A DNA stretch of 63,123 nucleotides, filler included, from Octopus bimaculoides (Eukaryota), in NCBI RefSeq assembly GCF_001194135.2. It is 6 parts of 6 records of this genome, joined end to end, with 100 filler letters (N's around TTAATTAATTAA, not from the genome) between each part and the next. Parts side by side here need not be neighbours in the genome. Positions count along the whole stretch, not along the records: positions 9,749 to 26,581 come from NC_068994.1; 5 more parts are not named here. The stretch is one strand, 5' to 3'. Under the pieces are notes generated by a model that was given only the letters and a program-made list of their open reading frames with translations, was not told where the DNA came from and made no database searches. This document shows positions 2,553 to 28,396 of this stretch, in pieces. The position numbers were made by a program, and so were the translations under genes. Each line of letters begins with the position of its first letter. The stretch's first letter is position 1.

Positions 2553-2583
<31 letters not shown>

Positions 2584-2689
2584 TTATGCCAGTCTTTGTA
2601 TTGTCCTCACCTCATCCTTTGCCCTGGTGGCAAATAAAAGAAATCATCATCATCATCATTATTATTACTGGTTGAATCCTTAATATGTT

Positions 2690-2975
2690 GAGCGATGCCA
2701 TTGCCAGTGCCGCTGGACTGGCTCCTGTGCAGGTGACACGTAAAAAACACCATTTGAGCGTAGCCATTGCCAGTACCGCCTGACTGGCCCTCGTGCTGGT
2801 GGCACCTAAAAGCACCCACTACACTTTCGGAGTGGTTGGCGTTAGGAAGGGCATCCAGCTGTAGAAACTCTGCCAGATCAGATTGGAGCCTGGTGTAGCT
2901 ATCTGGTTCGCCAGTCCTCAGTCAAATCGTCCAACCCATGCTAGCATGGAAAGCGGGTGTTAAACGTTGATGATA
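2690..2975 (+). mobile_element. SINE or non-autonomous element fragment with RTE-derived 3' region
   Basis: GTGGTTGGCGTTAGGAAGGGCATCCAGCTGTAGAAAC motif, then CCAACCCATGCTAGCATGGAAAGCGGGTGTTAAACG and a GAT/AAT tail. A related reversed copy lies at about 770-900. Confidence 0.65.
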
Positions 2976-3171
2976 ATAATTATTATTATACACGCACACA
3001 TATATATAAGAAGGGTACTTATCACATACATATATATAGACAAAGTTATGCGTTATGATTCTTTTATGCGACGGTTACACATTTTCGCCTGACACCGATT
3101 CACCTTGTTGTGAAGGTCGGACCAACTTGCGTGTGGCGGCTGTTTCACATTTATTTGTTCTTCCTTCACAG

Positions 3172-9538: not shown

Positions 9539-9772
9539 AGTCCTTCGAGGCGGTACCCCAAAATGGGCACAGTCCAACTGAATGAAACAACTTTACAGTG
9601 TGGACTGGTTGCTTTTTATGTGGCACTAGCATCAAGTAATGTGCAAGANNNNNNNNNNNNNNNNNNNNNNNNNNNNNNNNNNNNNNNNNNNNTTAATTAA
9701 TTAANNNNNNNNNNNNNNNNNNNNNNNNNNNNNNNNNNNNNNNNNNNNACACACACACACACACACACACAC

Positions 9773-9806
<34 letters not shown>

Positions 9807-9960
9807 GATGGGCTTCTTTCAGTTTCCGTCTACCAAATCCACTCAAGGCTTTGGTTGGCCTGAGGCTATAGTAGAAGACACTTGCCCAAAGTGCCACGCA
9901 GTGGGACTGATCCCGGAACTAGGTGGTTGGTAAGTAACCTACCTAACACACAGCCGCTCC
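9290..9960 (-). mobile_element. tRNA-derived SINE family B with internal (CA)n, split by an assembly gap
   Basis: Tail TACTCTTTACTTGTTTCAGTCATTTGACTGCGGCCATGCTGG, body, (CA)n, and head ...GTGCCACGCAGTGGGACTGATCCCGGAAC...CACACAGCC. Confidence 0.85.
9649..9748. other. Assembly gap spacer: 44 N, TTAATTAATTAA, 44 N
   Basis: The same 12-mer sits between N runs at 9693, 26626, 55571, 58395 and 61920. Confidence 0.95.
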
Positions 9961-10960
9961 TGTATGTATATTCTACAGAAGTGGATAAGTGGATAATGCC
10001 GTTAGCTCCTATTTTAGAAGTAAAAATCCGTAGTTCGAACCCTGCTTCTATGGGCGCAAACATACAGGAACAAGATACCTGAAGATGACTGAAAATGAAA
10101 CCGATCGAAATGTAGTGCTTTTAATATTAGAAAGTATTTGCTCTTTAAGGATGGGCTTAATAGCCACGCCCTGATTAACAATCAACATCAAAAAGAATAG
10201 TAAAACTATCCGCCAATCAGGAGCGACTATATAGGCCCGTGAAGCAATTAGTAAAAGCGTGGTACACGTAGACGCTTTTGCTAATTATTCTTTTTTTCAA
10301 AGCTTGTGTAGTCGCATGCTTCCTGGTTCCTATACGTTTGGTTCAGCGGCACATCTAGAATGTAGCTGGGGTAGGAGAGAGTTGCACCAGCACGTGGTTC
10401 GTATTCATTTACAGTCGAGCAGACTGGAGCAACGCGAAATGCAGTGCCTTTCTAAACGCGCTGTCCGATTGTTCAGGAATCGAACCCACGAGCTTACGAT
10501 CCTTAATCACCCCCACCCCACAAACCACTAGGTCAGGTGCCTTCACTCGATAAAACTATAATCAGGTCTTATAGCCCAAACAACATCTCATTTCAGACAT
10601 TTAGGCATTTTAACCAATAACAATATTTTTTTTATATAATACTATTAAAATAATTTCAGAAGTAAAACAAAAGGAAGATGGACGGCATCAATCAAGGGAA
10701 TCGAATGTTCTTTGTGTAAATGGAATGTTTACAAAATAATTAAAGATTCAATAATTTACATTAACTCATGATTAGAAAAAATATATAGTAATTATGTTTT
10801 TTTTTTTCGTATCACACTGTCAATAATATAGAAATGTATATGCATATATGTAGTTTCTGAAAGAAAAATATATAATACAGATATTTTAAAATGAATTGAT
10901 GGTTCAGTAACAATTCAATCATTTTAAGAACAGTTCTGTAAGAGTTTATCACGTTGCACG

Positions 10961-11379
10961 TTATCCAAGAGTTGGACCTCTGCTACATATGCAGTGCGTC
11001 GATGGGCAATGTCCGGCACGGCAGGTTGTCAGACACCACTGTTTCATTCCTGGAACTTTTTCGTAAACCTTTGTCACTTTGCAAGTCAAAGTATTGGCGT
11101 TACCATTTCCCCCACACTTGCAGTGTGTGGGCGGACAAAATCCGACGCCGCAGTGGGTGATACACCATTGTTTCATCCCAGGGACTGTTTTATATACTCC
11201 CACGGGATAACAGTCGTCTGGTGATGGGATGGTAGTTGCTCTTGTGGTGATCATCGTTGTCAAGTCTGGTGTAGTAGTAGCAGAGCTTGTTGATATTGTG
11301 CTATGACCACTGAATGTGGCCGTGAATTCGAAAGAACTAACTCGATCGCAACCAGCGTATTCCACCGCATTACCGTTTC
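10961..11379 (-). CDS. Exon 3 (terminal) of the secreted protein: end of the LPMO-like domain, Thr/Ser linker, two six-Cys modules
   Basis: Acceptor TTTTATTTTACAATTACAG (11381-11380), phase 1 matching exon 2. Encodes ...TTRATTIPSPDD-CYPVGVYKTVPGMKQWCITHCGVGFCPPTHCKC-GGNGNANTLT-CKVTKVYEKVPGMKQWCLTTCRAGHCPSTHCIC-SRGPTLG*. Confidence 0.9.
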
Positions 11380-11542
11380 CTGTAATTGTAAAATAAAACG
11401 AAAACCAAAATAAATAAATCAATAAGTAAATGAATAAATAAATAAATAAAGATACATGTAAACTTATCTAACTTAATTCAGTACAGTTGAAAATCCTTTA
11501 TCCGAAATATACCTAATACCTGTATACATATACATATACATA

Positions 11543-11595
<53 letters not shown>

Positions 11596-11744
11596 GTAAA
11601 AGCTATATTATGAAAAGTCAATGGATATTTGTGTTAGGACTCGCGTCCCTAGTGTCCCGCCCTCAAACTGTCCCATTTTATAAATCTGCAACACTTTCGG
11701 TTACAGGAGTGTCGGATAAGGGAATCTTAGTTGTATTACTCGTT

Positions 11745-11935
11745 TACTCTTTTACTTGTTTCAGTCATTTGACTGCGGCCATGCTGGAGCACCACTTTTT
11801 GTCGAACAAATCAACCCCAGGACTTATTCTTTGTAGGCCGAGTACTTATTCTATCGGTCACTTTTGCGGAACCGCTAAATGACGGGAACGTAAACACATC
11901 AACATTGGCTGTCAAGCGATGGTGGGGGGACAAAC

Positions 11936-12016
<81 letters not shown>

Positions 12017-12182
12017 TACATGATGGGTTTCTTTCAGTTTCCGTCTGCCAAATCCACTCACAAAGCTTTGGTCGACCCGAGGCTATAGTAGAAGACACTT
12101 TCCCAAGGTGCCACGCAATGGGGTCTGAACTCGGAACTATGTGGCTGGTAAGCAAGCTACTTACCACACAGTCACTCCTGTG
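11745..12182 (-). mobile_element. Full-length SINE family B in intron 2
   Basis: Complete tail, body, (CAGA)n(CA)n and tRNA-like head ending CACACAGTCACTCCTG. Confidence 0.9.
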
Positions 12183-12247
12183 CCTATTATGAATGTCATT
12201 TTTATAATTTTCATTTTGGTTAATTCCGAACCCCGACAGATACTTAC

Positions 12248-12480
12248 AAGGTGGTGAGCTGGCAGAACCATTAGCGTGCCGGGCGAAATGCTTAGCGGTA
12301 TTTCATCTGCCGTTACGTTCTGAGTTCAAATTCCGCCGAGGTCGACTTTGCCTTTCATCCTTTCGGGGTCGATAAATTAAGTACCAGTTACGCACTGGAG
12401 TCGACGTAATCGACTTAATCCCTCTGTCTGCCCTTGCTTGTACCCTCTATGTTTATCCCCTTGTGAGCAATAAAGAAATA
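12248..12480 (+). mobile_element. Full-length young SINE family A with 10-bp TSD AGATACTTAC
   Basis: Head AAGGTGGTGAGCTGGCAGAACC, B box GAGTTCAAATTCC, tail GCAATAAAGAAATA. TSD copies at 12238-12247 and 12481-12490. Confidence 0.92.
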
Positions 12481-12490
12481 AGATACTTAC

Positions 12491-12773
12491 TTGGCTTTAA
12501 TACCCACTTCACGAGGCAATTGTTGGAGCAATCAATATTTTCGTCGTTTTCCACAACAACTGTCAGAGACGACGTTTTGTAAGTCACTTCCACTTTCCTC
12601 AGTTCTTGCCAGAGACACGGCTGCGATGAAGACTGGCTATTTTCCTTCAAACATATGAATATATGTGCATCAAGGTTACTGGGATTATTTAATGGGAATT
12701 CAAATTTCACTTTGTCTAAATCTTGACTGTCACTCACGGCGACATTTTGCAGCAAAGTTTGGTTCGAAGATAC
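12491..12773 (-). CDS. Exon 2 of the secreted protein (AA15 LPMO-like beta domain, inferred)
   Basis: Acceptor TTTTCTTTTCTACCTTTCCAG, donor CCAA|GTAAGT, 283 nt, phase 0 to 1, fully open: VSSNQTLLQNVAVSDSQDLDKVKFEFPLNNPSNLDAHIFICLKENSQSSSQPCLWQELRKVEVTYKTSSLTVVVENDENIDCSNNCLVKWVLKP. Confidence 0.88.
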
Positions 12774-12842
12774 CTGGAAAGGTAGAAAAGAAAATTTTGA
12801 GTAAACTTGGAAAATAGTTTCATTTAAATAACACTAGATAAT

Positions 12843-13045
12843 CCTTTCTACTTTAGACAAAAGGTCTGAAATCTTGGGGGAGGGGAATAGTCGACTACAT
12901 CCACCCCAATGTTTCACTGGTACTTAATTTACCGACCCCGAAAAGCAAACTCAACCTCGGCGGAATTTGAACTCAGAGCACGTAAAGACGTACGACATGC
13001 TACTAAGTGTTTTGTTCCTGCGTGCTAACGTTTCTGCCATCTTGC
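12843..13045 (-). mobile_element. Older SINE family A copy, inverted relative to 12248-12480
   Basis: Reverse complement gives GATGGCAGAAACGTTAGCACG...CTGAGTTCAAATTCCGCCGAGG...GGGGTCGGTAAATTAAGTACCAG. Confidence 0.8.
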
Positions 13046-13084
13046 TACCTCGAATAACAGAAGATAATAATTAACTGAATAATT

Positions 13085-13125
<41 letters not shown>

Positions 13126-13189
13126 CTTTTTCTTTTATCGATTGTCTCCTTCATCCGTCACCCTGGTGGAAAAATGATTGATTAATGAT

Positions 13190-13470
13190 TGATGCGGGAG
13201 GACGAAACCGCCTTGCTGGATGTAATCGTTCAGTGTCCGTGCATTAGAGGGTTGTGGGCATGTGTGGAACAGCTGTTGTCTCGTGTAAGACGAATCTAAC
13301 CATCCCCCGAGGGCATTGTGAAGATAGACGCTCCCGCTTCCTTTTGGCAGAGAAGTAAAGTCCATCTTTTTTTTTGTGTTTAGTGGCCGTGGCAAAAGAG
13401 GTTGTGTGGTGGACACGCCTGAAAGGTTTCAAGTCAAGCACTTTCCTATATGGCCAAGCTTTGTGCAACC
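13190..13470 (-). pseudogene. Possible decayed CR1/L2-type reverse transcriptase fragment
   Basis: Frameshifted peptides VLDLKPFRRVHH (compare LDLxKAFDxVxH) and WLDSSYTRQQLF...QQGGFVLP (compare WxxSYLxxRxQxV...PQGSVLGP). Weak. Confidence 0.35.
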
Positions 13471-13502
13471 CAGGAGAACCCCATACACCGACCGGCCGGC
13501 CA

Positions 13503-13545
<43 letters not shown>

Positions 13546-13894
13546 NNNNNNNNNNNNNNNNNNNNNNNNNNNNNNNNNNNNNNNNNNNNNNNNNNNNNNN
13601 NNNNNNNNNNNNNNNNNNNNNNNNNNNNNNNNNNNNNNNNNNNNNNNNNNNNNNNNNNNNNNNNNNNNNNNNNNNNNNNNNNNNNNNNNNNNNNNNNNNN
13701 NNNNNNNNNNNNNNNNNNNNNNNNNNNNNNNNNNNNNNNNNNNNNNNNNNNNNNNNNNNNNNNNNNNNNNNNNNNNNNNNNNNNNNNNNNNNNNNNNNNN
13801 NNNNNNNNNNNNNNNNNNNNNNNNNNNNNNNNNNNNNNNNNNNNNNNNNNNNNNNNNNNNNNNNNNNNNNNNNNACTTCTAAGAGGTCATGGAC

Positions 13895-14093
13895 AAAAAC
13901 AATAACAACATGCAACAAAAACATCTTTAAATGATTATTCCGGAGCATATTCACCATCTACTTCAATTACTGCTTCCCATTTGCTTGGCAGACGGTCAGA
14001 CCGTCAGTTAAAGATGTTTTTGTTAAATATTGTTATTGTTTTTGTTGAATAAAATTTGTTGAAAAAAAGCCGCAATAATTATGCACCAACCCA

Positions 14094-14096
<3 letters not shown>
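13895..14096 (-). mobile_element. Internally deleted mariner element (MITE-like)
   Basis: Terminal TATTGGGTTGGTGCATAATTATTGCGGC resembles Hsmar1/MADE1-type TIRs. About 45-bp subterminal inverted repeats enclose the transposase C-terminal peptide RLPSKWEAVIEVDGEYAPE*. The left end runs into an N gap. Confidence 0.75.
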
Positions 14097-14141
<45 letters not shown>

Positions 14142-14695
14142 AAATGAGAGACAGAGAGCGAGAGCGAGAGGGAGAAACAGGAAAGTGGTACTTCGTACAT
14201 ATTACTTTAAACAAAAGAAGTGACGAAATCTGCGTACGAAAATGTCCTGCAGTCTAACGACGACACATCATTTCCCATTGAGTTGAAAATACGAGCGGTT
14301 ATGACCCGGCATTACTATTTCTTCACGAACTCCGCTTTAATGAGGCTCTCATAATTCATACTCGGATAAAACAGTTTCGTGACGTCATTGCTCCCTAGAT
14401 ATGGCCGATGTTTCATCACGTCCCATATTTGAACCGTCAAGGTTAGCATTACGTGAAACAGCATTCGAGATCACTTTTCGTTTCCATTTGTCTCTTCTTT
14501 CAATCTCATTAAAGCAGTCGTATTTTAATTGTAGCACGTTTCAGATGTTAGATGATATTTATTACACAACCTCTACCCCCTTCTCTCTCTCCACACACAC
14601 AAACACACACATATCATACACACACACACGCACACAAACGCTCTTTCTCTCTTTCTCATTCTCTCTCTGTATGTATGTCTGCAAGAATGTATGTA

Positions 14696-14760
<65 letters not shown>

Positions 14761-14951
14761 NNNNNNNNNNNNNNNNNNNNNNNNNNNNNNNNNNNNNNNN
14801 NNNNNNNNNNNNNNNNNNNNNNNNNNNNNNNNNNNNNNNNNNNNNNNNNNNNNNNNNNNNNNNNNNNNNNNNNNNNNNNNNNNNNNNNNNNNNNNNNTAT
14901 GTATGTATGTATGTATGTATGTATGTATGTATGTATGTATGTATGTATGTA

Positions 14952-14986
<35 letters not shown>

Positions 14987-15049
14987 CTGTATCTCACAGA
15001 CACAAACATACACTCGCGCATGCGCACTGTATGTGGTTGATTGGCCGAG

Positions 15050-15455
15050 TCTTTAGAGTGTCAGATAGATTGCTTTGCAGCCATTACTCCGGCTCGCTGC
15101 GCTCTGAGTTCGAATCCCACCGATGTCAACTTTTCTTTTCATCCTTACAAAATCGATAAAGTACCAGTCATGTACACGAGTCAATTTTTCATTTTCTTTC
15201 TTTCTTTCTTTATCACGAACATATTCTTTTCTACTCTAGGCACGAGGTCCGAATAATAATCCTTTCTACCATAGGCACAAGGCTTGAAAGTTTTGGGCGG
15301 AGGGGACCAGTCGATTGCATCAACCCCAGTGATTCGATTCCGAAAGGATAAAAGGCAAAGTCGACCTTCGAGGAATTTGAACTCAGAACGTAAAGACGGA
15401 CGAAATGTCGCTAAACATCTTCCTCGGAATGCTAACGATTCTCTCAACTAGCAGA
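15050..15455. mobile_element. Adjacent inverted pair of SINE family A copies (+ about 15050-15215, - about 15228-15455)
   Basis: GAGTTCGAATCCC...GTCAACTTT...TCGATAAAGTACCAG on plus; GGCAAAGTCGACC...GGAATTTGAACTCAGAACGTAAAG as the reversed copy. Confidence 0.75.
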
Positions 15456-15459
15456 ATAA

Positions 15460-15578
15460 TAAATGGTACGAACATGAACCTTGTAAAAGACTAGAAAGTA
15501 AGAAATATAGGATGTGAGACTTTAACATTCAGACTGACAGGGTAATAGAAGCTAGAAAGCCTGATTTGGTAGTAGTAA

Positions 15579-15613
<35 letters not shown>

Positions 15614-15935
15614 AATAAAGAGAATAGAAAGTACCAGATAATTGACTTTAGAGTCCCAAATGATGAGAAAATCAATATGAGAAGTATAGAGAAACTAGCA
15701 AAGTACCAGGACCTATCCATTGAATTACAGAGACTATGGAAAGTGTGGGTAAAATGTATTCCAATAGTTATGGCGCATTAGGAACTATCCTAAATATTTG
15801 AACAGATGGATGGAGGAAATAGGCATACAACCCAGTTTAGTACAGCTGCAGAAAGCAGTGTTATTAGGGACAGCTAGGATACTTAGGAGGGCTTTTGGCA
15901 TCTAAGGTTACTTGTTGTGGCCGGATGTTAGGATT
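15460..15935 (+). mobile_element. 3' fragment of an R4/Dong-like non-LTR retrotransposon (RLE domain)
   Basis: KWYEHEP...DFNIQTDRVIEARKPDLVV...IIDFRVP...EKLAKYQDLSIELQRLWK...IPIV...LQKAVLLGTARILRR, with frameshifts and stops. Confidence 0.85.
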
Positions 15936-16218
15936 CTTTTCTCCATATATATATNNNNNNNNNNNNNNNNNNNNNNNNNNNNNNNNNNNNNNNNNNNNNN
16001 NNNNNNNNNNNNNNNNNNNNNNNNNNNNNNNNNNNNNNNNNNNNNNNNNNNNNNNNNNNNNNNNNNNNNNNNNNNNNNNNNNNNNNNNNNNNNNNNNNNN
16101 NNNNNNNNNNNNNNNNNNNNNNNNNNNNNNNNNNNNNNNNNNNNNNNNNNNNNNNNNNNNNNNNNNNNNNNNNNNNNNNNNNNNNNNNNNNNNNNNNNNN
16201 NNNNNNNNNNNNNNNNNN

Positions 16219-16239
<21 letters not shown>

Positions 16240-16256
<17 letters not shown>

Positions 16257-16445
16257 CCCCTCCCACCGCCTGACAACCGGTGTTAGTGTGTTTACGTCAC
16301 CGTAACTTAGCAAAAGAGACCGGTAGAATAAGTGCCAGGCTTAAAGAAAAATGAGTTCTAGGGTCGATTTGTTCGACTAAAATCCTTCAAGGTGGTGCCC
16401 CAGCATGGGCGCAGTCAAATGACGGAAGCAAGTAAAAGATAAAAG
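16240..16445 (+). mobile_element. SINE family B, 3' half
   Basis: (GT)n, then GACAACCGGTGTTAGTGTGTTTACGTC...GGTGCCCCAGCATGG...CAGTCAAATGAC.GAAGCAAGTAAAAGA. Confidence 0.8.
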
Positions 16446-16734
16446 GTGCCGCAAAAGTTTAGAATTGCAAGGATTTTGGAACATGGAATCTGAAAAGTTT
16501 GCATCTGTGACAATTGGTGTAGGGACAGGTTGGAATGGAGGGACCTGTAGAGCTTCTACATCGAGGATTTTGAGATTGGTTCAAGGATGTTAAGTACCGT
16601 GGAAAGGGATCGTTTGAGATCTTTGACAAAAGGTTGTTGTCTGCTCTTACAGAATTAACCAGAGCAAGTGAAATCGGGAACTCTGAGAAGGGAAATGGAA
16701 ATGATGATGATGATGATAATAATAATAATAATAA

Positions 16735-17125
16735 AGAAGAAAAAAAATGCTTTCTAATTGATGTATCAATACCAGCAAATGACAACGTTTCTCTAAAAGA
16801 AATGGAAAAACTTTCAAAATACAAAGACCTGGAAATAGAGATAACTCGAATGTGGAATCTAAAAACAGAAACAATTCCTATCATAGTAGGTGCCTTAGGT
16901 ATAATAAAAAATATTCAGACAAATACATAACAAAAACACCAGGACTTACAAATATATATAACATACAGAAAATTGCACTACTGGGTACTGCACACATTCT
17001 ACGCAAAACACTTTCAATACAGTAAACATAAGAGCACCACAGCAAACCACAGCACATACCCAAGGCGCACAGAGCTGCGCTCGGTAGTGAAGTGAAAGCA
17101 CGTTATAAAAATAAAACTACTGAAC
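16735..17125 (+). mobile_element. 3' fragment of an R4/Dong-like LINE between (AAT)n arrays
   Basis: [55 protein letters not shown]...QKIALLGTAHILRKTLSIQ*, 3'UTR and (AAT)n tail. Confidence 0.9.
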
Positions 17126-17173
17126 AATAATAATAATAATAATAATTATTATAAAAATAATAATAATAAATAC

Positions 17174-17214
<41 letters not shown>

Positions 17215-17384
17215 TCATAATATAAAACCAAATATATGGCACCCTAGTCATAACACTAACTTGAACTTCTAACTTGTCTCTTGAGGTCTCTGGGTGAGAC
17301 TTGGACTTGCAGTCAACTTGTACAAATACAAAGCAAAAGTCAAACATATAACAGTAACAACAGCAACAACAACAATAATAATAA

Positions 17385-18133
17385 ATGCTCTGACGCAGTA
17401 CCAGGCAGTGGTTCTCATGGCTTCTGATCTTAATTGATTGGAAGTGTTATCATGTACATTGTTTTGTCTTGGTATAAAAAGATGGGCTGCAGCAAATATT
17501 CTGCTCAATACCTCAGATTTGCTTCTTCGTTACTTGACCATAACCAGTTGAGCACGTCCCGTAGTGGTTGACAATATGTGCATCTCTGATCTTGAGCAGG
17601 GGTAGTGGCGAAAGGGTGGGCATCATAGCCATGTTTTGAGAGAAATTCTTTGGGGTTTGAATAATTCACCTCTGGAAATCATCCTTAAACAACCCTCGTT
17701 CATCATCCTTAAACAACCTTCATTCAGGGACCTTTTGAGCGGGATGGGCTACTCGACCTGAAGAAAATTCTAACTGGGCCCCACCTGCCAAGTCATGCGC
17801 TGTTTATCTTCATATAAGGTCACCATGTCGCGCACATATGGTTGTGATATACATGCCTGGTGTACCCTTATCAGACGGGTAGTCATGATGGGTATATTGA
17901 GCTTCGTATATTTGTACCCCTGTGTCACTTTGAGGGCATGCATTATTCTCTCATTAGAATGCCTGGTAGAGCTCCTATAGAAAGTTTGTCTGTTAGGGAC
18001 AGCGAGGATTATCAGGAGGGTTCTAAGTACTTGAAAGACAGTTGAAAACTTGTGGATACCTAAGGTTACAGGTAGTAATCCGCTACCCACATAAATCGTA
18101 CCACGAATAAGACCGAACCTAAGCTAAACCAAA

Positions 18134-18164
<31 letters not shown>

Positions 18165-18390
18165 ATTCTGGTTTTATTGGTCACAAGGGCTAATATCAAT
18201 CAAAAACATGTAAGGACAAAGACAGGGTGAAGGTTACAAAGGGTTTTGTCCGAAAAGAAGAAAACGTTCGTGTAAACAGAGGAAAAACACAGAAAGATAT
18301 AACAAATAAAACTCCCAATAGGGGGAGGCACTTCGAAAGGTTACACGTGGAAAAATCCAAAAAAGCCACGGGAGCCTGGTCAGAAAATTA
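17385..18390. mobile_element. Mosaic: interspersed repeat (about 17385-17935), R4-like 3' end (+, about 17960-18140), L1/Tx1-type 3' end (-, about 18165-18390)
   Basis: Plus peptide KVCLLGTARIIRRVLST* followed by (AAT)n; minus T-rich UTR ending GCCCTTGTGACCAATAAAA. Family assignments are by recollection only. Confidence 0.55.
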
Positions 18391-18405
18391 AGAAAGGGGT
18401 ATAGA

Positions 18406-18454
<49 letters not shown>

Positions 18455-18455
<1 letters not shown>

Positions 18456-18790
18456 TGAAAGACAGAGAAGAAGTTGATGAATATGGAGACCTGAGAATTA
18501 AGATCGCTAAGATGTGGCAGCTACGAGAGACGGACATAAAGGTTATTCCTATTGTCATCGGAGCATTGGGTTCAATACCACCCAATCTGAAAAAAACATC
18601 TGCAAACTTCAGAAATACCCTACAATCTAGATGTATTGGAAAAGTCGGCATTACTTGGAAATGCAGGCACATTGCGTAAAGTACTGTCTGTCTGAGGTCC
18701 TTGTTGTGACTTGACAAACAGTACAACCCCCCCCCCCCGGTAGATACAATATCTTTAACCAACAACCTCATGATATTGTATACTGTGAGG
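18455..18790 (+). mobile_element. 3' fragment of an R4/Dong-like LINE
   Basis: KDREEVDEYGDLRIKIAKMWQLRETDIKVIPIVIGALGSIPPNLKK, directly after an (AAT)n array. Confidence 0.8.
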
Positions 18791-18844
18791 CGTCTATAAT
18801 AATAGTAATAATAATTATGATAATAATAAGGTTGTTGAACTTAC

Positions 18845-18931
18845 CTTGCAAATGAGGGGTGAAAGCGCAAATGTAATTTTTGCCGTTAATACTGTGAGCA
18901 ATATCAAAGAAATATAACAGTAAGACAACAT
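18845..18931 (-). CDS. Exon 1 of the secreted protein: signal peptide MLSYCYISLILLTVLTAKITFA then LSPLICK
   Basis: ATG at 18931 (in-frame upstream ATGs at 18964 and 18958), hydrophobic core with a small residue at the predicted cleavage site, consensus phase-0 donor CAAG|GTAAGT matching exon 2. Confidence 0.75.
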
Positions 18932-19258
18932 GGTTGGAACTCCTTTGTTATTCACCATTATCATCTTGTTCGCTATTGCTGTCGTCGGCAATAAATAAGC
19001 AACCGTTTGATATCTCCAGGTAACACAGTCTACAATATGCAATGTATCAATGTATATATATATATGTGTGTCGCGTATATGTATGTAAGTATGTATGTAC
19101 GATTATATAGATGTATCTATTTCGCCGCCTGCGTTGGAGATCGTTCTTGTTTTCGTGTCTATCAATATATAAATTACTAACGACAAGAAAAAATAATCCC
19201 AGCAAGTACAAAGAATAGCAACAGCAATGATAATTACGTAATAATAATAATAATAATG

Positions 19259-19293
<35 letters not shown>

Positions 19294-19391
19294 CAGTTGT
19301 AATACACTTCAGTAGCTATGTTAGAGTACAAGTGAATGGACTATGAAAGTTTGCGAGATTGCTTCACAGCCGGTTTTTCTTCTCTTAATAA

Positions 19392-19435
<44 letters not shown>

Positions 19436-19548
19436 GCGTGTATACGTATATATCTCTATGCGTGTGAAAACAAAAACGGTAGGCGAAGCTCGCTAAAGAA
19501 CACGCTGCGTGTTAACAGTGATTCTGACCGAAACTGCTTCCAAGCGTT

Positions 19549-19558
19549 CTTTATATAG
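19549..19558 (-). promoter_or_regulatory. Candidate TATA box for the secreted-protein gene
   Basis: CTATATAAAG in non-microsatellite, CpG-containing context with GTCAGA about 30 nt downstream and about 600 bp upstream of the ATG. Motif evidence only. Confidence 0.3.
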
Positions 19559-20365
19559 AGGCAGGCGTGTATACATGCACAAGTGTTTTGTATGTATGTA
19601 AATAGATTTATGTAAGTACATGTGTAAGGTAAATGTTTGTGACTATGTATGTGTGTATGTGAATGTGTGTGTGTGTGTGTGAATGTTTGTGGGCGTGTTC
19701 TACAGGTTGTATCCGCCATTGTCGCTCTTCCACTAACCGGCTTGCACCTGTTAAAAACACAATCCTTATTGTTATCAAACGCCATGCTTAGAAGATAGGG
19801 CTTGTATTTCTTGCCTTCTTTGTTTGTTTGTTTCTTTCTTTCTTCCCGTCCCTCCTTTCTTTCTTTCATTCATTCATTCTTTCGTTCTTTCTTTCTTTCT
19901 TCTTTCTTTTTTTTTCTTTAGGTTTTACGTTTCATTGGCTCTTAGAAAGAAGTAAAAATAGTCTCTGACATTGTCTAAAGTGATAACAACAGCACCGCAA
20001 AGTGCATCATCATCATCATCATCAACAACAATAACAACAGCAACAACAACAGCTGCCGCCGCCGCCGCCGTCGCCGCACGAACGCAACAACAAAGAAAAG
20101 CAATGAAAACACGGTACGGTTTATTATTAAAATCTTTCCACTGGGACATCGTCGTCGTCACTCTTTAAATTACTTCATTGCGTCTTTGAGGGTAAATCAC
20201 GGATCTCAAATGGGTAATCATGCGTTTTACTGCCGTGATTTTTTCCGGTTACGAATCCTGAATAAGAGGAAGTGCGCTCGTGTGTGTATGTGTGGGCATC
20301 TATATATAGAAATGAATTATCAGCTTATTTGTATATGTATATATATATGTATGTATGCATGTATG

Positions 20366-20405
<40 letters not shown>

Positions 20406-21339
20406 NNNNNNNNNNNNNNNNNNNNNNNNNNNNNNNNNNNNNNNNNNNNNNNNNNNNNNNNNNNNNNNNNNNNNNNNNNNNNNNNNNNNNNNNNNNNNNN
20501 NNNNNNNNNNNNNNNNNNNNNNNNNNNNNNNNNNNNNNNNNNNNNNNNNNNNNNNNNNNNNNNNNNNNNNNNNNNNNNNNNNNNNNNNNNNNNNNNNNNN
20601 NNNNNNNNNNNNNNNNNNNNNNNNNNNNNNNNNNNNNNNNNNNNNNNNNNNNNNNNNNNNNNNNNNNNNNNNNNNNNNNNNNNNNNNNNNNNNNNNNNNN
20701 NNNNNNNNNNNNNNNNNNNNNNNNNNNNNNNNNNNNNNNNNNNNNNNNNNNNNNNNNNNNNNNNNNNNNNNNNNNNNNNNNNNNNNNNNNNNNNNNNNNN
20801 NNNNNNNNNNNNNNNNNNNNNNNNNNNNNNNNNNNNNNNNNNNNNNNNNNNNNNNNNNNNNNNNNNNNNNNNNNNNNNNNNNNNNNNNNNNNNNNNNNNN
20901 NNNNNNNNNNNNNNNNNNNNNNNNNNNNNNNNNNNNNNNNNNNNNNNNNNNNNNNNNNNNNNNNNNNNNNNNNNNNNNNNNNNNNNNNNNNNNNNNNNNN
21001 NNNNNNNNNNNNNNNNNNNNNNNNNNNNNNNNNNNNNNNNNNNNNNNNNNNNNNNNNNNNNNNNNNNNNNNNNNNNNNNNNNNNNNNNNNNNNNNNNNNN
21101 NNNNNNNNNNNNNNNNNNNNNNNNNNNNNNNNNNNNNNNNNNNNNNNNNNNNNNNNNNNNNNNNNNNNNNNNNNNNNNNNNNNNNNNNNNNNNNNNNNNN
21201 NNNNNNNNNNNNNNNNNNNNNNNNNNNNNNNNNNNNNNNNNNNNNNNNNNNNNNNNNNNNNNNNNNNNNNNNNNNNNTATATATATATTTATAATATTTA
21301 TATATATGTATGTGTGTGGTGTGTGTATATGTTTGGTTG

Positions 21340-21630
21340 TGTGTTTTTGTCCACACAACATCGCTTCACAGCCGGTGCTGGTGTGTTTACATCCCTGTCA
21401 CTTTGCGGTTCGGCAAAAGGTGGTGCTCCAGCATGGCCGCAGTCAAATGACTGAAATAGGTAAAAGAATATATATATAATGGGGTTCTTTCAGTTTCCAT
21501 CTACCAAATCCGCTCAGAAGGCTTTTGTCGGCCCGAGGCTATAATAGAAAACACTCGCCGAAGGTGCCACACAGTGGGACTGAACCCAGAACCGTGTGGT
21601 TAGTAAGCAAGCTACTTACCACACAGCCAC
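21340..21630. mobile_element. Two SINE family B halves (+ 3' half about 21340-21470; - head half about 21480-21630)
   Basis: GGTGCTCCAGCATGGCCGCAGTCAAATGACTGAAA and TTCTTTCAGTTTCC...CTTACCACACAGCCACTC. Confidence 0.75.
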
Positions 21631-21649
21631 TCGATACATATACATGCAA

Positions 21650-21698
<49 letters not shown>

Positions 21699-22307
21699 AA
21701 TTTATATCTACCGGCCCTTATATACACACAGACCTATGTATATGCCCCACCGTAGTTCTCCACCCATATTTTATTGTAATCTATTATATTCTTTCTTTTA
21801 AAAATATTTTGTTGTATTGTTTTCCATTTTATTGCATATTATTGTTGTTTATTGTATTGTATTATATGGTCTAATCTTGTTTTTTTTCTGTTTGTCTCGT
21901 GTTGGGACCATAAGGGAAATATTATAATGATCTTTAGTGACATAGCTATACTTGTCGTTGTTGTTGTTGTTGTTGCTTAGTCACTGATTCAGAACGTAAA
22001 AATGTATATGATTCGTGTGAAATTTGGCTGTGAATTCTTTGTGTAAAGATGAATGCGAAAGCAAAACATGAGAGTAGCACACACACACACAGAGTAATCA
22101 ATCACTCGCCATGTCGCGGTTTAGTAATCGCGCCCTCAGTACATCGCGGACTTTTCTGGCTAACGTATATGTAAATTTATATCGCGGACTCTTCAGTATA
22201 TCACGGGTTTCTGCGGCCGATAGGTATTTATATTTTTTTAAATTTTAATTATTTCTGTGATAAATCCAGCATTTTCACGCCTATAAATTAATAAATTAAT
22301 AAATAAC

Positions 22308-22381
<74 letters not shown>

Positions 22382-22644
22382 NNNNNNNNNNNNNNNNNNN
22401 NNNNNNNNNNNNNNNNNNNNNNNNNNNNNNNNNNNNNNNNNNNNNNNNNNNNNNNNNNNNNNNNNNNNNNNNNNNNNNNNNNNNNNNNNNNNNNNNNNNN
22501 NNNNNNNNNNNNNNNNNNNNNNNNNNNNNNNNNNNNNNNNNNNNNNNNNNNNNNNNNNNNNNNNNNNNNNNNNNNNNNNNNNNNNNNNNNNNNNNNNNNN
22601 NNNNNNNNNNNNNNNNNNNNNNNNTGTTAGCTTCGCATTGATGA

Positions 22645-22907
22645 ATATAAAACATAAATGCGCCCTTTTTAAAGCCAAGCCAGGCTCATGGGCCCGGTTT
22701 CCTGGTTTCAACGGCGTATGTGTTCCCCAGCTGGACAGGACGCCAGTCCATCGCAGCGTTACTCATTTTTGCCAGCAGAATGAACTGGAGCAACGTGAAA
22801 TGAAGTGTTTTGCTCAAGAACACAACGCGTCGCCCGGTCCAAGAATCGAAACCACAATCTTACGATCATGATGCTGACACCCTAACCTCTAAGCCACGCG
22901 CCTCCAC
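22645..22907 (-). mobile_element. tRNA-derived SINE family D with TSD TCGCATT(G/A)ATGA
   Basis: Head GTGGAGGCGCGTGGCTTAGAGGTTAGGGTG...GGTTTCGATTC. TSD copies at 22633-22644 and 22908-22919. Confidence 0.85.
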
Positions 22908-22932
22908 TCGCATTAATGAGATATGGGTATAA

Positions 22933-23430
22933 TATTGTTTATGCATGAAAGAAAAAAAAAACGGAGAAACTGAGATAAAGACATCAATTTATTAGAGTAT
23001 ATTTAATTCCAAACAAAAGCAGACTCTTAGCACCTGCAATTGTTTCCATGCTCAATTAATTCAATTTGAGAAATTAAATTAAATTAAATTAAAGTTTCAT
23101 ATTGAATATAGGTAATTGGACATTTCGTCAGGGTAAGAATTTGATTTATATTGGATGCAAATACGCACATATCTGAGTCTATTAAGGATCTACCATCGCG
23201 TAGGAATGTAGCTCCTTTCTATCAAATTCTTTCCCTGACGAAATATCCAATTAGTCATATTCAATATGAAACTTTAAATCAATTTAACTTCATTTCTCAA
23301 ATTGAATTAATTGGGCATGGAAACAACTGTAGGGGCTAAGAGTTTGCTTTTGTTTCGAATTAAATATGTTCTTATAAACCGATGTCTATATCTCAATTTC
23401 TCCGTTTTTTTTTCTCATACGTAAACAATA
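22933..23430. repeat. Long inverted repeat / foldback (MITE-like) element
   Basis: About 210-bp arms (22933-23145 and 23221-23430) are degenerate reverse complements around a 75-bp spacer. Confidence 0.85.
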
Positions 23431-23972
23431 AATATTTATATATATAAACTCTGTACATCACTTCAAACAATTATATACACGCGCACACACACATCTGTAT
23501 ATGCACACACGCATATACACGTATGTAAAAACAAAATGTTCTGCTCATGTGATACTGGTCGGGTGACACTGATCCTGTGACGCCGAAAACCGGCTCTGCA
23601 GGAAAATATTGTACCCATGTCAAATGATATTGTACGATTGTGTGGGAAGCGAAAAAGGGGGAAAAACAGGGACTGGAATTTTGTGTGAATTATCTGAATT
23701 TTCTCGGGTTGTACGTTATTGTAGATGACCCCTACGTTGACCTCCATTCTATTGACCCTTTTAAGGGAGAATGGAATTTTCTAGGTGTCGCTCAAAGTGG
23801 TATGCAACGTTGTTTTGTTAGGCACATTTTTCTTATTGAGGAATTTAATTAATCTGATGTCTTATTGTTGTGAGGGTCCGTAGGGAGCTTCGGTATTGCG
23901 GCTCATGGACACACGGTTTTGTGTGTGTGTATGTGTGTGTATATACACATCTACCCACATTCTACATACACA

Positions 23973-24260
<288 letters not shown>

Positions 24261-24826
24261 CATCAATGTTCGATTTCCATGCAGGGGATGGAGTGGCAGA
24301 ATCGTTAAAGTGTCTGAAAAAATGCTTTGCTGCTGTTGTTCTGACTCTTTACATTCTAAGTTCAAATGGCACCGATTTCAACTTTGCCTTTTCATATAAG
24401 TGCAGGCATGACAGTGGTCAAAAGCTCGTTGATAAATTCTTATGTCCATTTCCTACGTTTCCGCCTTTAGGCCTTCACTTCATCCACATCAGCTGAATTT
24501 GATTCGTTCCCAGTTGAAAGGCGCCTGTTGTTATTTCTTGTTGTTTGTATTCGTAATTGTGTACCATGCTCTCCATCTTTTTGTTTGTTTGTTTTTTGTC
24601 TTTGTTGCCGTACACATTCGCTAGCTTTCTCACAAAGGGGTCTAATGCTCTTAGCTTAGACTTTTTTGTGGAGCAACCAGATGGAACCATCACAAGTGTA
24701 ACTGCCTGAAATGGTCGTGACTTCTGGAACTCGACTGAGTCTGTCCTTCTAATCGTTGTTTCTCTTGTCCGCCTTTGTGTCGTCTATCTGTCCGAATGTT
24801 TTAATGTCCTCTATTGCGTTTTTGTT

Positions 24827-24869
<43 letters not shown>

Positions 24870-25001
24870 NNNNNNNNNNNNNNNNNNNNNNNNNNNNNNN
24901 NNNNNNNNNNNNNNNNNNNNNNNNNNNNNNNNNNNNNNNNNNNNNNNNNNNNNNNNNNNNNNNNNNNNNNNNNNNNNNNNNNNNNNNNNNNNNNNNNNNN
25001 N

Positions 25002-25032
<31 letters not shown>

Positions 25033-25656
25033 AGTAATTATATCTAATCAGTTGACATTCTTAGGATGAGGCTTGTTTAACAGCCTTTTTCATTCTTCAT
25101 CTATAATACATTAAAAGTCAGATTGAATCTTGCATGCTTGCAATGTTACCCAGCCAAATAGGAGCATAATGGGAAAATACTATGACTGAAATCTCCCCTG
25201 AAATATAAATACGAACGGAATGAAACAAATTTCGCGTAAATCGGATAAGTGGTTGTGAAGATATTAAGAGTTTTCAGGATATAAATACCGTAAACGGTGA
25301 ATAATGGTAAAAGTATCCGAAATTAACTTAATCCTGACAGAAAGTAACTCTTACCTTTCGATGAGACTGACTTGGCAGCGAAAAAATACAGTTGTTTTTT
25401 TTTCTTACGATAAATAATCATTTAGAAATATTTTTAAGTGAATGCGATTTTAAAAATTGTAAGTTGTTTGTACAATAAGTATTTATATTTTAGCTTTCTT
25501 TAAACAGACCATATTTTTATTATTTTCAAGTGAATAACATTGCAAAATACGTTTTTGACATAAATATTTCGTAAAAGACCCATTCGTAATCTCGGCATGA
25601 AATTATTTTTTCCATAGGCTTTTTTCGAGTGCATTCAACGTATTTCACTTCCAAAG

Positions 25657-25767
25657 ATTTGGCTGCTATTTCTAACACGCTCTGCTACCACGTAACTGCT
25701 ATTTGCGATAAAGGACCCAAAATACCTGTTACGTGGTAGCAGAGCGTGCAAGAAATAGTAGCCAAAT
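25657..25767. repeat. 40-bp near-perfect hairpin with a 31-nt loop
   Basis: ATTTGGCTGCTATTTCTAACACGCTCTGCTACCACGTAAC pairs with GTTACGTGGTAGCAGAGCGTGCAAGAAATAGTAGCCAAAT at 37 of 40 Watson-Crick positions plus one G-U. Confidence 0.9.
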
Positions 25768-26227
25768 TTTTCCTTTTCTGGGGAAAGGTGCCGCTTACGC
25801 GTGATTTCCTTGTCACATTCGTTGAAGCAACCGGGAAAAGAAGAAAAAAAAAACACGAAACAAAACTCCGTTGCAGGAAAACTCAGACTTTGCCTGCAAC
25901 CCAACGGGTCACGGGTAGTCTGATATAATATTTTCAGTGCATGATCTTTAGAATCTTTAGAATCTTTACTCTATACAGGCAAGAGAAATGAGAGAAGCTT
26001 TTGTTTTTTTCAAGATGAAATTTTCTTCAAAACAAATAAATAAAGACAATATTTATTTCCTCGCAGATTTAATAAGGTTACAAACCGTGAAGGACATTTA
26101 TTTTGCTATAAGGGAGTTATGCAATGTACGGAATTGGATGACAGTATATATGTACAGTTGAGGAGGAAAAGAGAATTAAATCCATAAATTGAAATGTAAC
26201 AAAGTTGTTGTTCGCTTTCTGTTTCAG

Positions 26228-26267
26228 CTGACATATTGGGATTCTCAGAAGGAGGACAAAAACCAGA
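26228..26267 (+). other. Candidate 40-nt exon ((A)DILGFSEGGQKP or LTYWDSQKEDKNQ)
   Basis: Acceptor TTCGCTTTCTGTTTCAG, donor AGA|GTGAGG. Confidence 0.25.
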
Positions 26268-26346
26268 GTGAGGCTATTCTACTCAACAGCGTCTCCTTTC
26301 ACGCTTGAGCCTTCCATCCAGGGAACTGCTTTACAAAAAAAGATTG

Positions 26347-26581
26347 TATTGGGTTGTGGAATAATTAATTAGCGTTTTTTAAAAATGCACGCAGGAAAAT
26401 GCGGTGAAAAAAAAAAAAAAAGATTGACAAGTTTAATATGAGGAGATATTCAAAAGGACGAATAGGTCCAAGAGGGAAATAGTTGTGAGAAACAAGGTAA
26501 AAGTTCAACCTAAACAAAGCGAAGACGACGCCATTTGCCAAAAGAAGAGTAACGAGGGTGAGAACGTCTGCAAATGCATCG
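26347..26581 (+). mobile_element. Mariner-type terminus remnant
   Basis: TATTGGGTTGTGGAATAATTAATTAGCGTTTTTT resembles the TIR ending at 14096. The segment ends at a gap. Confidence 0.4.
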
Positions 26582-26953: not shown

Positions 26954-28396
26954 TACATGCATGCATACATACAAACGAAAATTTCAATGAAGGAGCCTTG
27001 GATCTAGGTTAGAAACCGGTTCTTTCTCTATTGGCAAGAAATCTTGAAATAAAACAAAATAATGACACACATACACACATACATACATACATGCATGCAT
27101 GCATGCATGCATAAATACACGTGCACGCACACACATATGTATGTATATATATATGTGAACATATGCATGTACATATGTCTGTCTATCTATCTATCTAATA
27201 GTGTGCATATGTAAGACTGCGTGCGCGTATGCGTTCATGTATGAATATATGTATTTGTGTGTAGTTTATTTTCTCCCTATCGCCTTATCCTACAGTGTGT
27301 ACATGTGCGGTGTTTTGTGTGTGCCTGTGTGTATGTGTATGCGTGCGCGCGTATGTGTGTTTTCACTTTCTTGTATTTTTACTTTCTTTCTCTGTCATCT
27401 TTCTGCTTCCTGATATGTTTTTATTTTATTAAAATTTTTGTTTTTACCGGTCCCAGGGACTATGCTACTGCCATGATGGGGCGTCGCCTTCAAAGGTTAG
27501 CCACCCCAAGGGGCTTCTACATGGTTTCTCAATATGCTAAAACTAATGACCACGTCGTTTTCAAATTTCATGACACTCTACAGTCTTAACTATACGTAAG
27601 ACAATGTGGTCAATCTCTCTCTCTCTCTCTCTTTGCTGTCTTACACAGACACACAGACACACATAGACACACACACACACACGCACGCACGCACACGCAG
27701 CACTAGCATTAACATACACACATTGACAGATAGATAGATAGATAGATAGATAGACAGATAGATATATTCTCGAGTTGATTACGATTCGAGGCCTTCTATT
27801 ATAAGTCTGCTTGAAAAGTGTTAACCTGGTGTTACATATCAATAGCCAGGGCCGGTTAAAGGTTCCGGCCGTTCGAGTAGACCCCAAGGTGTTATATGCT
27901 TGGGGGCATCACATACCTTGCTTGGGATCTACGAAATAACAAGAAAAAGCAAACAAACAAACAAATCCAAGTAAAAAATTAAATAAACGCAACTATTACG
28001 TATATTTAAGGAACTGAAATAATTACTTTTAAATTTTTAGTTTCTAGGTTTCACTCCTTGTGAAAAACTATATTTTTCAGGTTACCTGGGCGCCAGTAAT
28101 CCTAGAGGTGCTCTTAATAGTTGTAACAACAGCATTCGAAGACTTTAGCAGATTTTATTCCCTAACAATACTGTGCCTACTATATATTTCATGGCCCTCG
28201 GAGAGACGAAAAGCAAAATCGTTTAGCATTTGAACTCAAAATTCCTCAACAGACGCGACTAAATCTCCAAGTTATTATGTTTTTCTCTCTCAATTTGGCG
28301 CTCTTCCGATTCTGGTGTTCTGGTATCTAAATTTCTGTACATTAACACTTTACACTTCTATCACTCTCTGTATAGTGTGTGCACATGGACGCACGC

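Follow-up and report, generated by a model that had tools for sequence, protein, structure and literature searches.

The locus and its gene

The window considered here is a stretch of 63,123 nucleotides (nt) of Octopus bimaculoides DNA (assembly GCF_001194135.2), composed of six parts joined by filler. The sequence examined is the piece at positions 9,749-26,581, which comes from NC_068994.1, and coordinates are window positions throughout. The piece carries the three-exon gene LOC106872312 on its minus strand. The product would be a secreted, disulfide-rich and non-enzymatic protein, in which a truncated domain derived from the lytic polysaccharide monooxygenases (LPMOs) of family AA15 is followed by a linker and two cysteine modules. 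The probability of this reading is put at about 0.72. The parts of the gene are listed below in the direction of transcription, with a slash at each splice point; residue numbers of the AA15 protein TdAA15A of Thermobia domestica are preceded by Td.

18964-18845, minus strand: exon 1 coding sequence, residues 1-40, 120 nt; ATG at 18964; donor TGCAAG/GTAAGT
18964-18866, minus strand: signal-peptide-like stretch, residues 1-33, within exon 1
Exon 1 after the signal-like stretch, minus strand: LSPLICK, with the first cysteine of the N-terminal domain (N-domain)
18844-12774, minus strand: intron 1, phase 0, 6.1 kb; three assembly gaps, microsatellites and interspersed repeats
12773-12491, minus strand: exon 2, residues 41-134 plus 1 nt, 283 nt; acceptor TTTCCAG/G, donor AGCCAA/GTAAGT; contains NNPS, IFIC-x11-C and IDC-x3-CLVKW, the putative core of the AA15-derived beta-sandwich (approximately Td 59-165)
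12490-11380, minus strand: intron 2, phase 1, GT-AG; rich in microsatellites and in repeats resembling short interspersed elements (SINE-like)
11379-10961, minus strand: exon 3, 419 nt; acceptor ATTACAG/G, stop TAA
11379-11300, minus strand: end of the N-domain, residues 135-161, RNGNAVEYAGCDRVSSFEFTATFSGHS; sixth cysteine and last predicted strand, EYAGCDRV
11299-11216, minus strand: Thr/Ser-rich linker, residues 162-189, 55% Ser/Thr
11215-11108, minus strand: cysteine module 1, residues 190-225, DCYPVGVYKTVPGMKQWCITHCGVGFCPPTHCKCGG; C-x15-C-x3-C-x4-C-x4-C-x-C
11086-10979, minus strand: cysteine module 2, residues 233-268, TCKVTKVYEKVPGMKQWCLTTCRAGHCPSTHCICSR; pattern as in module 1
10963-10961, minus strand: stop codon TAA

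The exon 2 acceptor has a polypyrimidine tract ending in CAG. When joined, the exons give a coding sequence of 822 nt and, from the ATG at 18964, a product of 273 amino acids. This product is 100% identical to the NCBI entry 'uncharacterized protein LOC106872312 [Octopus bimaculoides]'. NCBI thus already has the gene model, albeit with neither name nor domain. An earlier reading of this DNA (the original prediction) had arrived at three exons with consensus splice sites and phases 0 and 1, and the same coordinates were recovered here. Its product of 262 amino acids is what is obtained from the second in-frame ATG at 18931, whereas the annotated start gives the longer protein. The layout that it described, a signal peptide, a six-cysteine domain, a Thr/Ser linker and two cysteine modules, is also that of the translated product. 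The N-terminus is hydrophobic and signal-like (Kyte-Doolittle peak of about 2.5 over residues 16-26), and the six cysteines of the N-domain are at positions 39, 81, 93, 122, 126 and 145. The linker is likely to be a mucin-type O-glycosylated spacer, judging from its composition. Downstream of the stop codon, conservation of about 88% with O. sinensis continues to approximately 10293, and the sole poly(A)-like hexamer 3' of the gene is an ATTAAA at 10125-10120. No tRNA or Rfam feature was found in the piece with ARAGORN or Rfam.

Probable kinship with AA15, and the copper site

Searches of the protein databases placed the window protein (P0001, paralogue A) in a family with its O. sinensis orthologue LOC115219204 and with a paralogue B from O. 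sinensis (LOC118765915, P0003) and Argonauta hians (P0004). A profile built from the four N-domain sequences was compared with 177,635 distinct PDB sequences. The top match was 5msz_A, which is TdAA15A (E 3e-6, 30.7 bits, Td 67-169), and the next was at E 0.03. The alignment with 5msz_A brings together four cysteines and the CxxC[VL]xQW motif. Other comparisons used the TdAA15A sequence (5MSZ_A) as recovered from the PDB search alignments. Alignment of the family profile with it by hhalign gave a probability of 95.9% (E 5.4e-9), BLASTP of P0004 gave 37.4 bits (E 8e-8), and tblastn with TdAA15A matched exactly exon 2 of paralogue B (E 4.9e-7; 21642-21926 of L002, the paralogue B locus). What if this were simply the consequence of two cysteine-rich proteins being compared? 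The real TdAA15A scores 30.0 bits and none of its 5000 shuffles went above 7.7 bits, which means that the match is not a product of cysteine content. Agreement also extends beyond the cysteines: KNI-[IT]-[VI], FxFxxC-x11/12-C and LPxxxxC-[TS]-[NK]-C-[VI]-[VL]-Q-W are aligned, and so is the Pro before His91. The sub-threshold match to the Pfam family LPMO_10 likewise falls on the corresponding part of that profile. The AA15-aligned region coincides with exon 2.

The link to the window gene itself is transitive. P0001 and P0004 match over 239 amino acids at E 4e-29 and are alike in architecture. This places the window protein in the octopod family, and its AA15 ancestry would be inherited through paralogue B. 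Taken as a family, then, the octopod proteins are supported as descendants of AA15, the window gene included by way of paralogue B. The core of the original prediction, a secreted protein that descends from the C-terminal portion of an AA15 LPMO and is devoid of the histidine brace, gains support from the four-sequence profile, hhalign, BLASTP and the shuffles. The motif match from which it started has the spacing that was quoted (IFIC-x11-C, IDC-x3-CLVKW, AGC-x5-FEF), but the window protein, taken singly, does not resemble AA15 to a significant degree, which makes that match a lead and not a proof.

In a mature AA15 protein residue 1 is a histidine, and both its amino-terminus and its imidazole bind copper. 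TdAA15A holds copper with His1 and His91, has an axial Tyr184 and an Ala89, and contains five disulfides (PMC5823890). The octopod proteins differ at each of the histidines. The mature chain would plausibly begin at L34 or K29 in the window protein, at I or K in O. sinensis and at L or N in paralogue B, and in none of the four proteins do its first 40 residues include a histidine. The predicted lack of a His1 agrees with every plausible N-terminus, and the predicted start at Leu with one of the two in the window protein. At the second position of the brace, Td His91 (Q-A-P-H) aligns with the Ser of NNPS in paralogue A, as had been predicted, and with an Asp in paralogue B (DPDH, with a His one residue later). 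The Pro that precedes this position is invariant. No N-terminal His means no histidine brace, and by the chemistry of LPMOs such an N-domain could neither bind copper nor cleave polysaccharide in the LPMO fashion. Histidine-brace catalysis accordingly appears to be excluded by the alignments. As for an alternative copper site formed by other histidines, the candidates His77 and His160 were rejected, as they are not conserved in paralogue B.

The loss is not confined to single residues. Td 1-64, including three cysteines, has no counterpart and is replaced by about 20 residues with one new cysteine, which agrees with the earlier claim that the N-terminal AA15 subdomain is missing. The octopod N-domain has about 125 residues, compared with about 190 in a full AA15 catalytic domain, and its counterpart is Td 65-169, or perhaps as far as Td 190. 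Of the ten cysteines of AA15, four or five are kept. The loop of about 20 residues before the last strand, which bears C169 and C178, is missing.

The identity of the last strand and of the sixth cysteine depends on the alignment. HMMER pairs the sixth cysteine with R-Y166-G-D-C169, the original prediction had placed it on C178, and MAFFT aligns E-Y142-A-G-C145 with E-Y184-R-N-C187. The earlier equation of AGC-x5-FEFTATF with the AA15 motif GC-x5-F..CADI was not reproduced, since the cysteine falls on Td C169 or C187. The MAFFT version of the tail would keep a tyrosine at the axial Tyr184 position, where F151 had been placed before, and it coincides with the last confident strand of the AlphaFold2 (AF2) model. 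The tail alignments nevertheless compete.

The octopod family, its modules and their rates of evolution

AA15 proteins occur in molluscs (PMC5823890). The truncated family described here is small. When 1.84 billion representative proteins were searched exhaustively by HMMER with the paralogue A N-domain, only the orthologue and P0003 (weakly, E 8e-4) came back, and nothing outside Octopus. A profile search added P0004 from A. hians, and word-indexed protein searches brought the members to only four in total. A search for cephalopod orthologues, which had been suggested with the original prediction, thus yielded one in O. sinensis together with paralogues in O. sinensis and A. hians. The IMG/VR scan with the N-domain was empty, and nothing relevant was found in the literature searched on the LOC identifiers or on cephalopod LPMOs. 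These results describe what appears to be a two-paralogue family (A, the window gene, and B), so far found only in octopods.

The orthologue is about 77-78% identical in amino acids to the window protein. Paralogue B lies about 100 kb from it on O. sinensis chromosome CM016872.1 (L002), and its introns are at the same positions, the three-exon plan being common to both. The public model of LOC118765915 is only 184 amino acids long and reads into intron 2 (L002 10001-28404). Its third exon, encoding the linker, both cysteine modules and an acidic/basic tail, lies at L002 27853-28404, right after an N gap at 27749-27848, and this gap is the reason that the public model is shortened. In place of the Thr/Ser linker, paralogue B has a stretch rich in Pro, Met, Tyr and His that includes PMAMNYPMHHIPYAPYLYNY. 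It also has an extra C-terminal tail that ends in a conserved basic and hydrophobic DQRKAQQ..LKRQRLY.IQMYFK. The regions concerned are P0004 135-200 and 270-335 and L002 27853-28404, and their composition is somewhat reminiscent of the structural-material proteins of cephalopods.

The C-terminal half is built on a 36-residue module, for which six copies in three proteins give C-x5-[YF]-x2-VPG[MI]-x2-WC-x3-C-x2-[GN]-x-CP-x2-HC-x-C. All six contain CxxxC, GxC (NxC in one) and CxC in the canonical order. The order C...CxxxC...GxC...CxC is the signature of cysteine-stabilised alpha/beta (CSalpha/beta) peptides, whose helix is held against a beta-sheet by the disulfides C2-C5 and C3-C6, and the spacing C4-x4-C5-x-C6 is that of short scorpion toxins. 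Relatives of the module were not found by word-indexed protein search or by pattern scans of the IMG/VR and JGI metagenomes. The Pfam family 'Antimicrobial21' came up at E 0.008 but with 16 bits, where its cut-off is 27, and this was set aside as a chance CxxxC match.

How have the two halves of the protein evolved? Comparison of O. bimaculoides with O. sinensis gives the following ratios of non-synonymous to synonymous substitution rates (dN/dS, or omega).

Whole protein: 0.66
N-domain (exon 2, 12491-12773, plus 11300-11379): 1.21
Linker: 1.04
C-terminal modules (10979-11215): 0.26

Of the changes in the N-domain, 36 are non-synonymous and 8 are synonymous, which fits neutrality (p 0.85) and rejects the omega of 0.26 (p 9e-6). 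The modules, on the other hand, fall short of what neutrality would give (p 0.003). The two species have all 18 cysteines of the mature protein in common. The constraint on the modules suggests that they are probably the binding or effector part of the protein, while the LPMO-derived N-domain would be either relaxed or diversifying.

These elements can be assembled into a working model. Behind a signal peptide would stand a domain of about 125 residues descended from the C-terminal two thirds of an AA15 LPMO. It would retain the core of the Ig-like beta-sandwich with the CxxC[VL]xQW strand, as well as the Pro before His91 and four or five AA15 cysteines. It would have lost Td 1 to about 64, that is His1 and the loops forming most of the flat substrate face, as well as His91 and the loop of about 20 residues before the last strand. 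Deprived of copper, the sandwich probably serves as a scaffold or as a variable recognition surface. The Thr/Ser linker, probably O-glycosylated, would tether it to the two disulfide-knotted 36-residue modules, to which binding or effector activity probably belongs. Chitin binding by the protein, as proposed in the original prediction, is possible. Residues 1-64, from which most of the substrate-binding face of an LPMO is built, are deleted.

Alternative explanations and significance

A number of observations weigh against this model. On its own, the window protein reaches 1.0 bit with HMMER and a probability of 2.7% with hhalign against AA15, and phmmer against the PDB sequences gave it only chance matches (U2AF65). 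No Pfam family was above threshold in any of the four proteins in a listing to E <= 10. PF03067 (LPMO_10) matched P0003 at 13.7 bits, below the cut-off of 23 (profile positions 95-168 of 183), and did not match P0001, P0002 or P0004. The AF2 model of the N-domain was made from the four-sequence alignment and is of middling confidence (pLDDT, the predicted local distance difference test score, 71; pTM, the predicted template modelling score, 0.67). It shows an eight-strand, all-beta, Ig-like sandwich for which Foldseek found no match at E <= 1e-3 in the PDB or BFVD. Many non-LPMO sandwiches ranked above the AA10 LPMOs, and 5MSZ itself was outside the top 50. The last strand and sixth cysteine are ambiguous, with three competing alignments. 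It is by cysteine pattern alone that the modules would be of the CSalpha/beta type. The best hit of the module profile in the PDB is scorpine at a non-significant E of 2.2. The AF2 model of the module, in which CxxxC is helical and CxC forms a strand, has a pLDDT of only 54, and Foldseek gave nothing below E 2.6. Finally, the near-neutral dN/dS of the N-domain also fits a decaying domain.

One alternative is that the protein is an immune or venom-type effector and not a chitin-matrix protein, with defensin-like modules carried or guided by a fast-evolving LPMO relic that acts as a diversifying recognition or carrier domain. The canonical cysteine order of all six modules (one with NxC), the toxin-like spacing known from scorpions, the predicted helix and strand, the status of scorpine as the sole PDB profile match and the rapid evolution of the N-domain would all suit it. 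However, none of the module comparisons is significant (E 2.2; pLDDT 54; Foldseek empty), no Pfam defensin or toxin family is matched, and a dN/dS of about 1 is no evidence of positive selection. This explanation is doubtful.

A second alternative, somewhat more doubtful still, is that the N-domain is an ordinary Ig/Fn3-like domain and that its match to AA15 is a chance convergence of cysteine spacing. The predicted structure could be taken in this sense. The top 50 PDB matches from Foldseek are Ig-like sandwiches that include KirBac, CopC/PcoC, FnIII, the NF-kB dimerisation domains and IL-18BP, all at E > 1e-3, and BFVD likewise returned generic sandwiches. The AA10 LPMOs 6ndq and 5uiz have the joint-highest query TM-score in the top 50 (0.46), but an E of 0.02 and ranks of 42-45. 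A Foldseek comparison had been proposed with the original prediction. Fn3-like sandwiches and AA10s did come back, but LPMOs were not singled out, and the fold is best described as compatible with an LPMO core but not discriminating. The sub-threshold LPMO_10 score and the silence of the window protein alone point the same way. Against this, the unbiased PDB profile search ranks AA15 first by four orders of magnitude, the 30 bits of the real match contrast with at most 7.7 in the 5000 composition-matched shuffles, and the agreement goes beyond cysteines (KNI[IT][VI], the Pro before His91 and LP..x.C[TS]NC[VI][VL]QW).

Could paralogue A instead be decaying, or be a recent pseudogene with a functionless N-domain? 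The dN/dS of the N-domain and of the linker are both indistinguishable from neutral, and the amino acid identity of 77% is no higher than the nucleotide identity of the introns (about 80-88%). Nevertheless, both species have an undamaged frame, start and stop and four sound splice sites, every mature cysteine is conserved, the modules are under purifying selection and the core of the N-domain is conserved back to the A/B duplication. Decay is thus improbable.

It is very unlikely that the gene is a full AA15 LPMO whose His1 or N-terminal exon was overlooked by annotation or is hidden in a gap: intron 1 does have three gaps and, being in phase 0, could take an in-frame exon, but the gap-free intron 1 of O. 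sinensis (11 kb) and the paralogue locus lack such an exon, the signal-peptide exon is spliced directly to exon 2 without a length difference in the four gene models available for three species, no family member has kept His91, and a signal peptide on exon 1 means that a later exon could not expose a His as residue 1. A brace-restoring exon in one of the gaps, which the original prediction had raised as a possibility, was thus not found. With full-length TdAA15A, tblastn detected no coding sequence resembling Td 1-58 in the window, in L002 or in L001, the orthologous O. sinensis locus. L001 (34 kb) has no N, is collinear with the entire window piece and has the matching three GT-AG exons at 10001-10111, 21103-21385 and 23696-24114.

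The gaps themselves look like repeats. The three N runs (13546-13874, 14761-14897 and 15955-16218) are all within intron 1 and none touches coding sequence. A microsatellite directly adjoins each of them: (TC)n, 13505-13545, the first; (TG)n, 14688-14760, and (TATG)n, 14898-14982, the second; and (TG)n, 16219-16255, the third. The counterpart of the gap at 14761-14897 in L001 is an (ATAC)n array. Microsatellites also adjoin gap edges elsewhere in the piece (20332-20405, 22325-22381, 24829-24869 and 25002-25030), and no array was called at the edges 13875, 15954, 21278 and 22625. Since nearly all gap edges adjoin di- or tetranucleotide microsatellites, the gaps are most likely to be unresolved simple repeats and not missing unique sequence.

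Other repeats are found in and around the gene. On the plus strand of intron 1, antisense to the gene, open reading frame (ORF) fragments at 15566-15781, 16634-16930 and 18455-18679 share KY.DL.IE..R.W.......IPIV.GALG, and seem to be copies of a single family of transposable-element ORF, each from its C-terminal end. A 193-nt inverted repeat (22953-23145 and 23221-23413), with arms that are 89% complementary and 75 nt apart, lies roughly 4 kb upstream of the gene. It resembles a miniature inverted-repeat transposable element or a hairpin, and O. sinensis has conserved this region (L001 approximately 2276-3021, in both orientations). SINE-like interspersed repeats occur at 9799-9960, 12016-12190, 21472-21632, 12247-12480 and 15334-15449, each beside (CA)n or (ACAG)n. 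Copies of the element at 12247-12480 are clustered in tandem at L001 19000-19936, in the intron of O. sinensis. ARAGORN and Rfam made no call on these repeats.

If the protein is indeed a copper-free AA15 derivative, how does it compare with known systems? TdAA15A (PDB 5MSZ; Pfam PF03067, LPMO_10) is likewise secreted and disulfide-rich with a beta-sandwich core. Its C100, C113, C151 and C154, its Pro90 and its C-T-N-C-V-L-Q-W strand are aligned in the octopod family, and the octopod E-Y-x-x-C last strand may retain the axial Tyr184. The octopod protein differs in having no N-terminal His, in the loss of Td 1-64 (three cysteines and the L2-type surface) and in the replacement of His91 by Ser or Asp. 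Its C-terminal partner is a novel cysteine module and not CBM1 or CBM14. CopC/PcoC and the LPMO-like proteins of the X325 type are also small Ig-like beta-sandwiches, and CopC/PcoC is among the Foldseek matches, but these proteins bind copper, many with an N-terminal His, whereas the octopod domain has no conserved His. The modules share with invertebrate defensins, short scorpion toxins and scorpine the six-cysteine order and, as predicted, the helix on CxxxC and the strand on CxC. They depart from these CSalpha/beta peptides in an unusually short C3-C4 loop (four residues), a long C1-C2 segment (15) and an invariant VPG[MI]xxW. They are also tandem domains of a larger protein and not free peptides, and they lack a significant match in sequence or structure.

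A precedent for the loss of the copper site is fungal. LsAA9B ('Arg-AA9') is reported to be an LPMO-like AA9 member without the histidine brace (Frandsen et al. 2019, J Biol Chem 294:17117, cited in PMC10354095). It too is an LPMO-family protein that has lost its copper site, is still secreted and presumably has a non-oxidative function. It differs in that the LPMO fold is full-length with a point replacement of His1, whereas in the octopod protein the whole N-terminal third is gone, along with both histidines.

Perhaps an internal segment of an AA15 gene, amounting to little more than a single exon, came to lie behind a new signal-peptide exon in the octopods. This would have created a copper-free, fast-evolving recognition domain joined to two defensin-like modules, and hence a lineage-specific class of secreted effector in immunity, in saliva or venom, or in the defence of eggs or mucus, made from a defunct carbohydrate-oxidising enzyme and a six-cysteine module not described before. 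This scenario is offered as speculation and is itself rather unlikely.

Among animals, AA15s are known for their part in the moulting and digestion of arthropods. To our knowledge LPMOs have been studied almost exclusively as copper enzymes, and we are aware of almost nothing on the AA15s of molluscs. In the literature searched there was no description of a truncated AA15 relic fused to a cysteine module in cephalopods. The practical importance of the finding is modest for now. It provides a first annotation for four 'uncharacterized' octopod proteins without a Pfam domain, and it defines a new 36-residue, six-cysteine module, C-x5-[YF]-x2-VPG[MI]-x2-WC-x3-C-x4-CP-x2-HC-x-C, that is under purifying selection. 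If the proposed descent is true, an animal LPMO has been turned into a pseudo-enzyme by a route that goes further than the single-residue loss in fungal LsAA9B, and the octopod family would reveal which part of the LPMO fold can stand alone.

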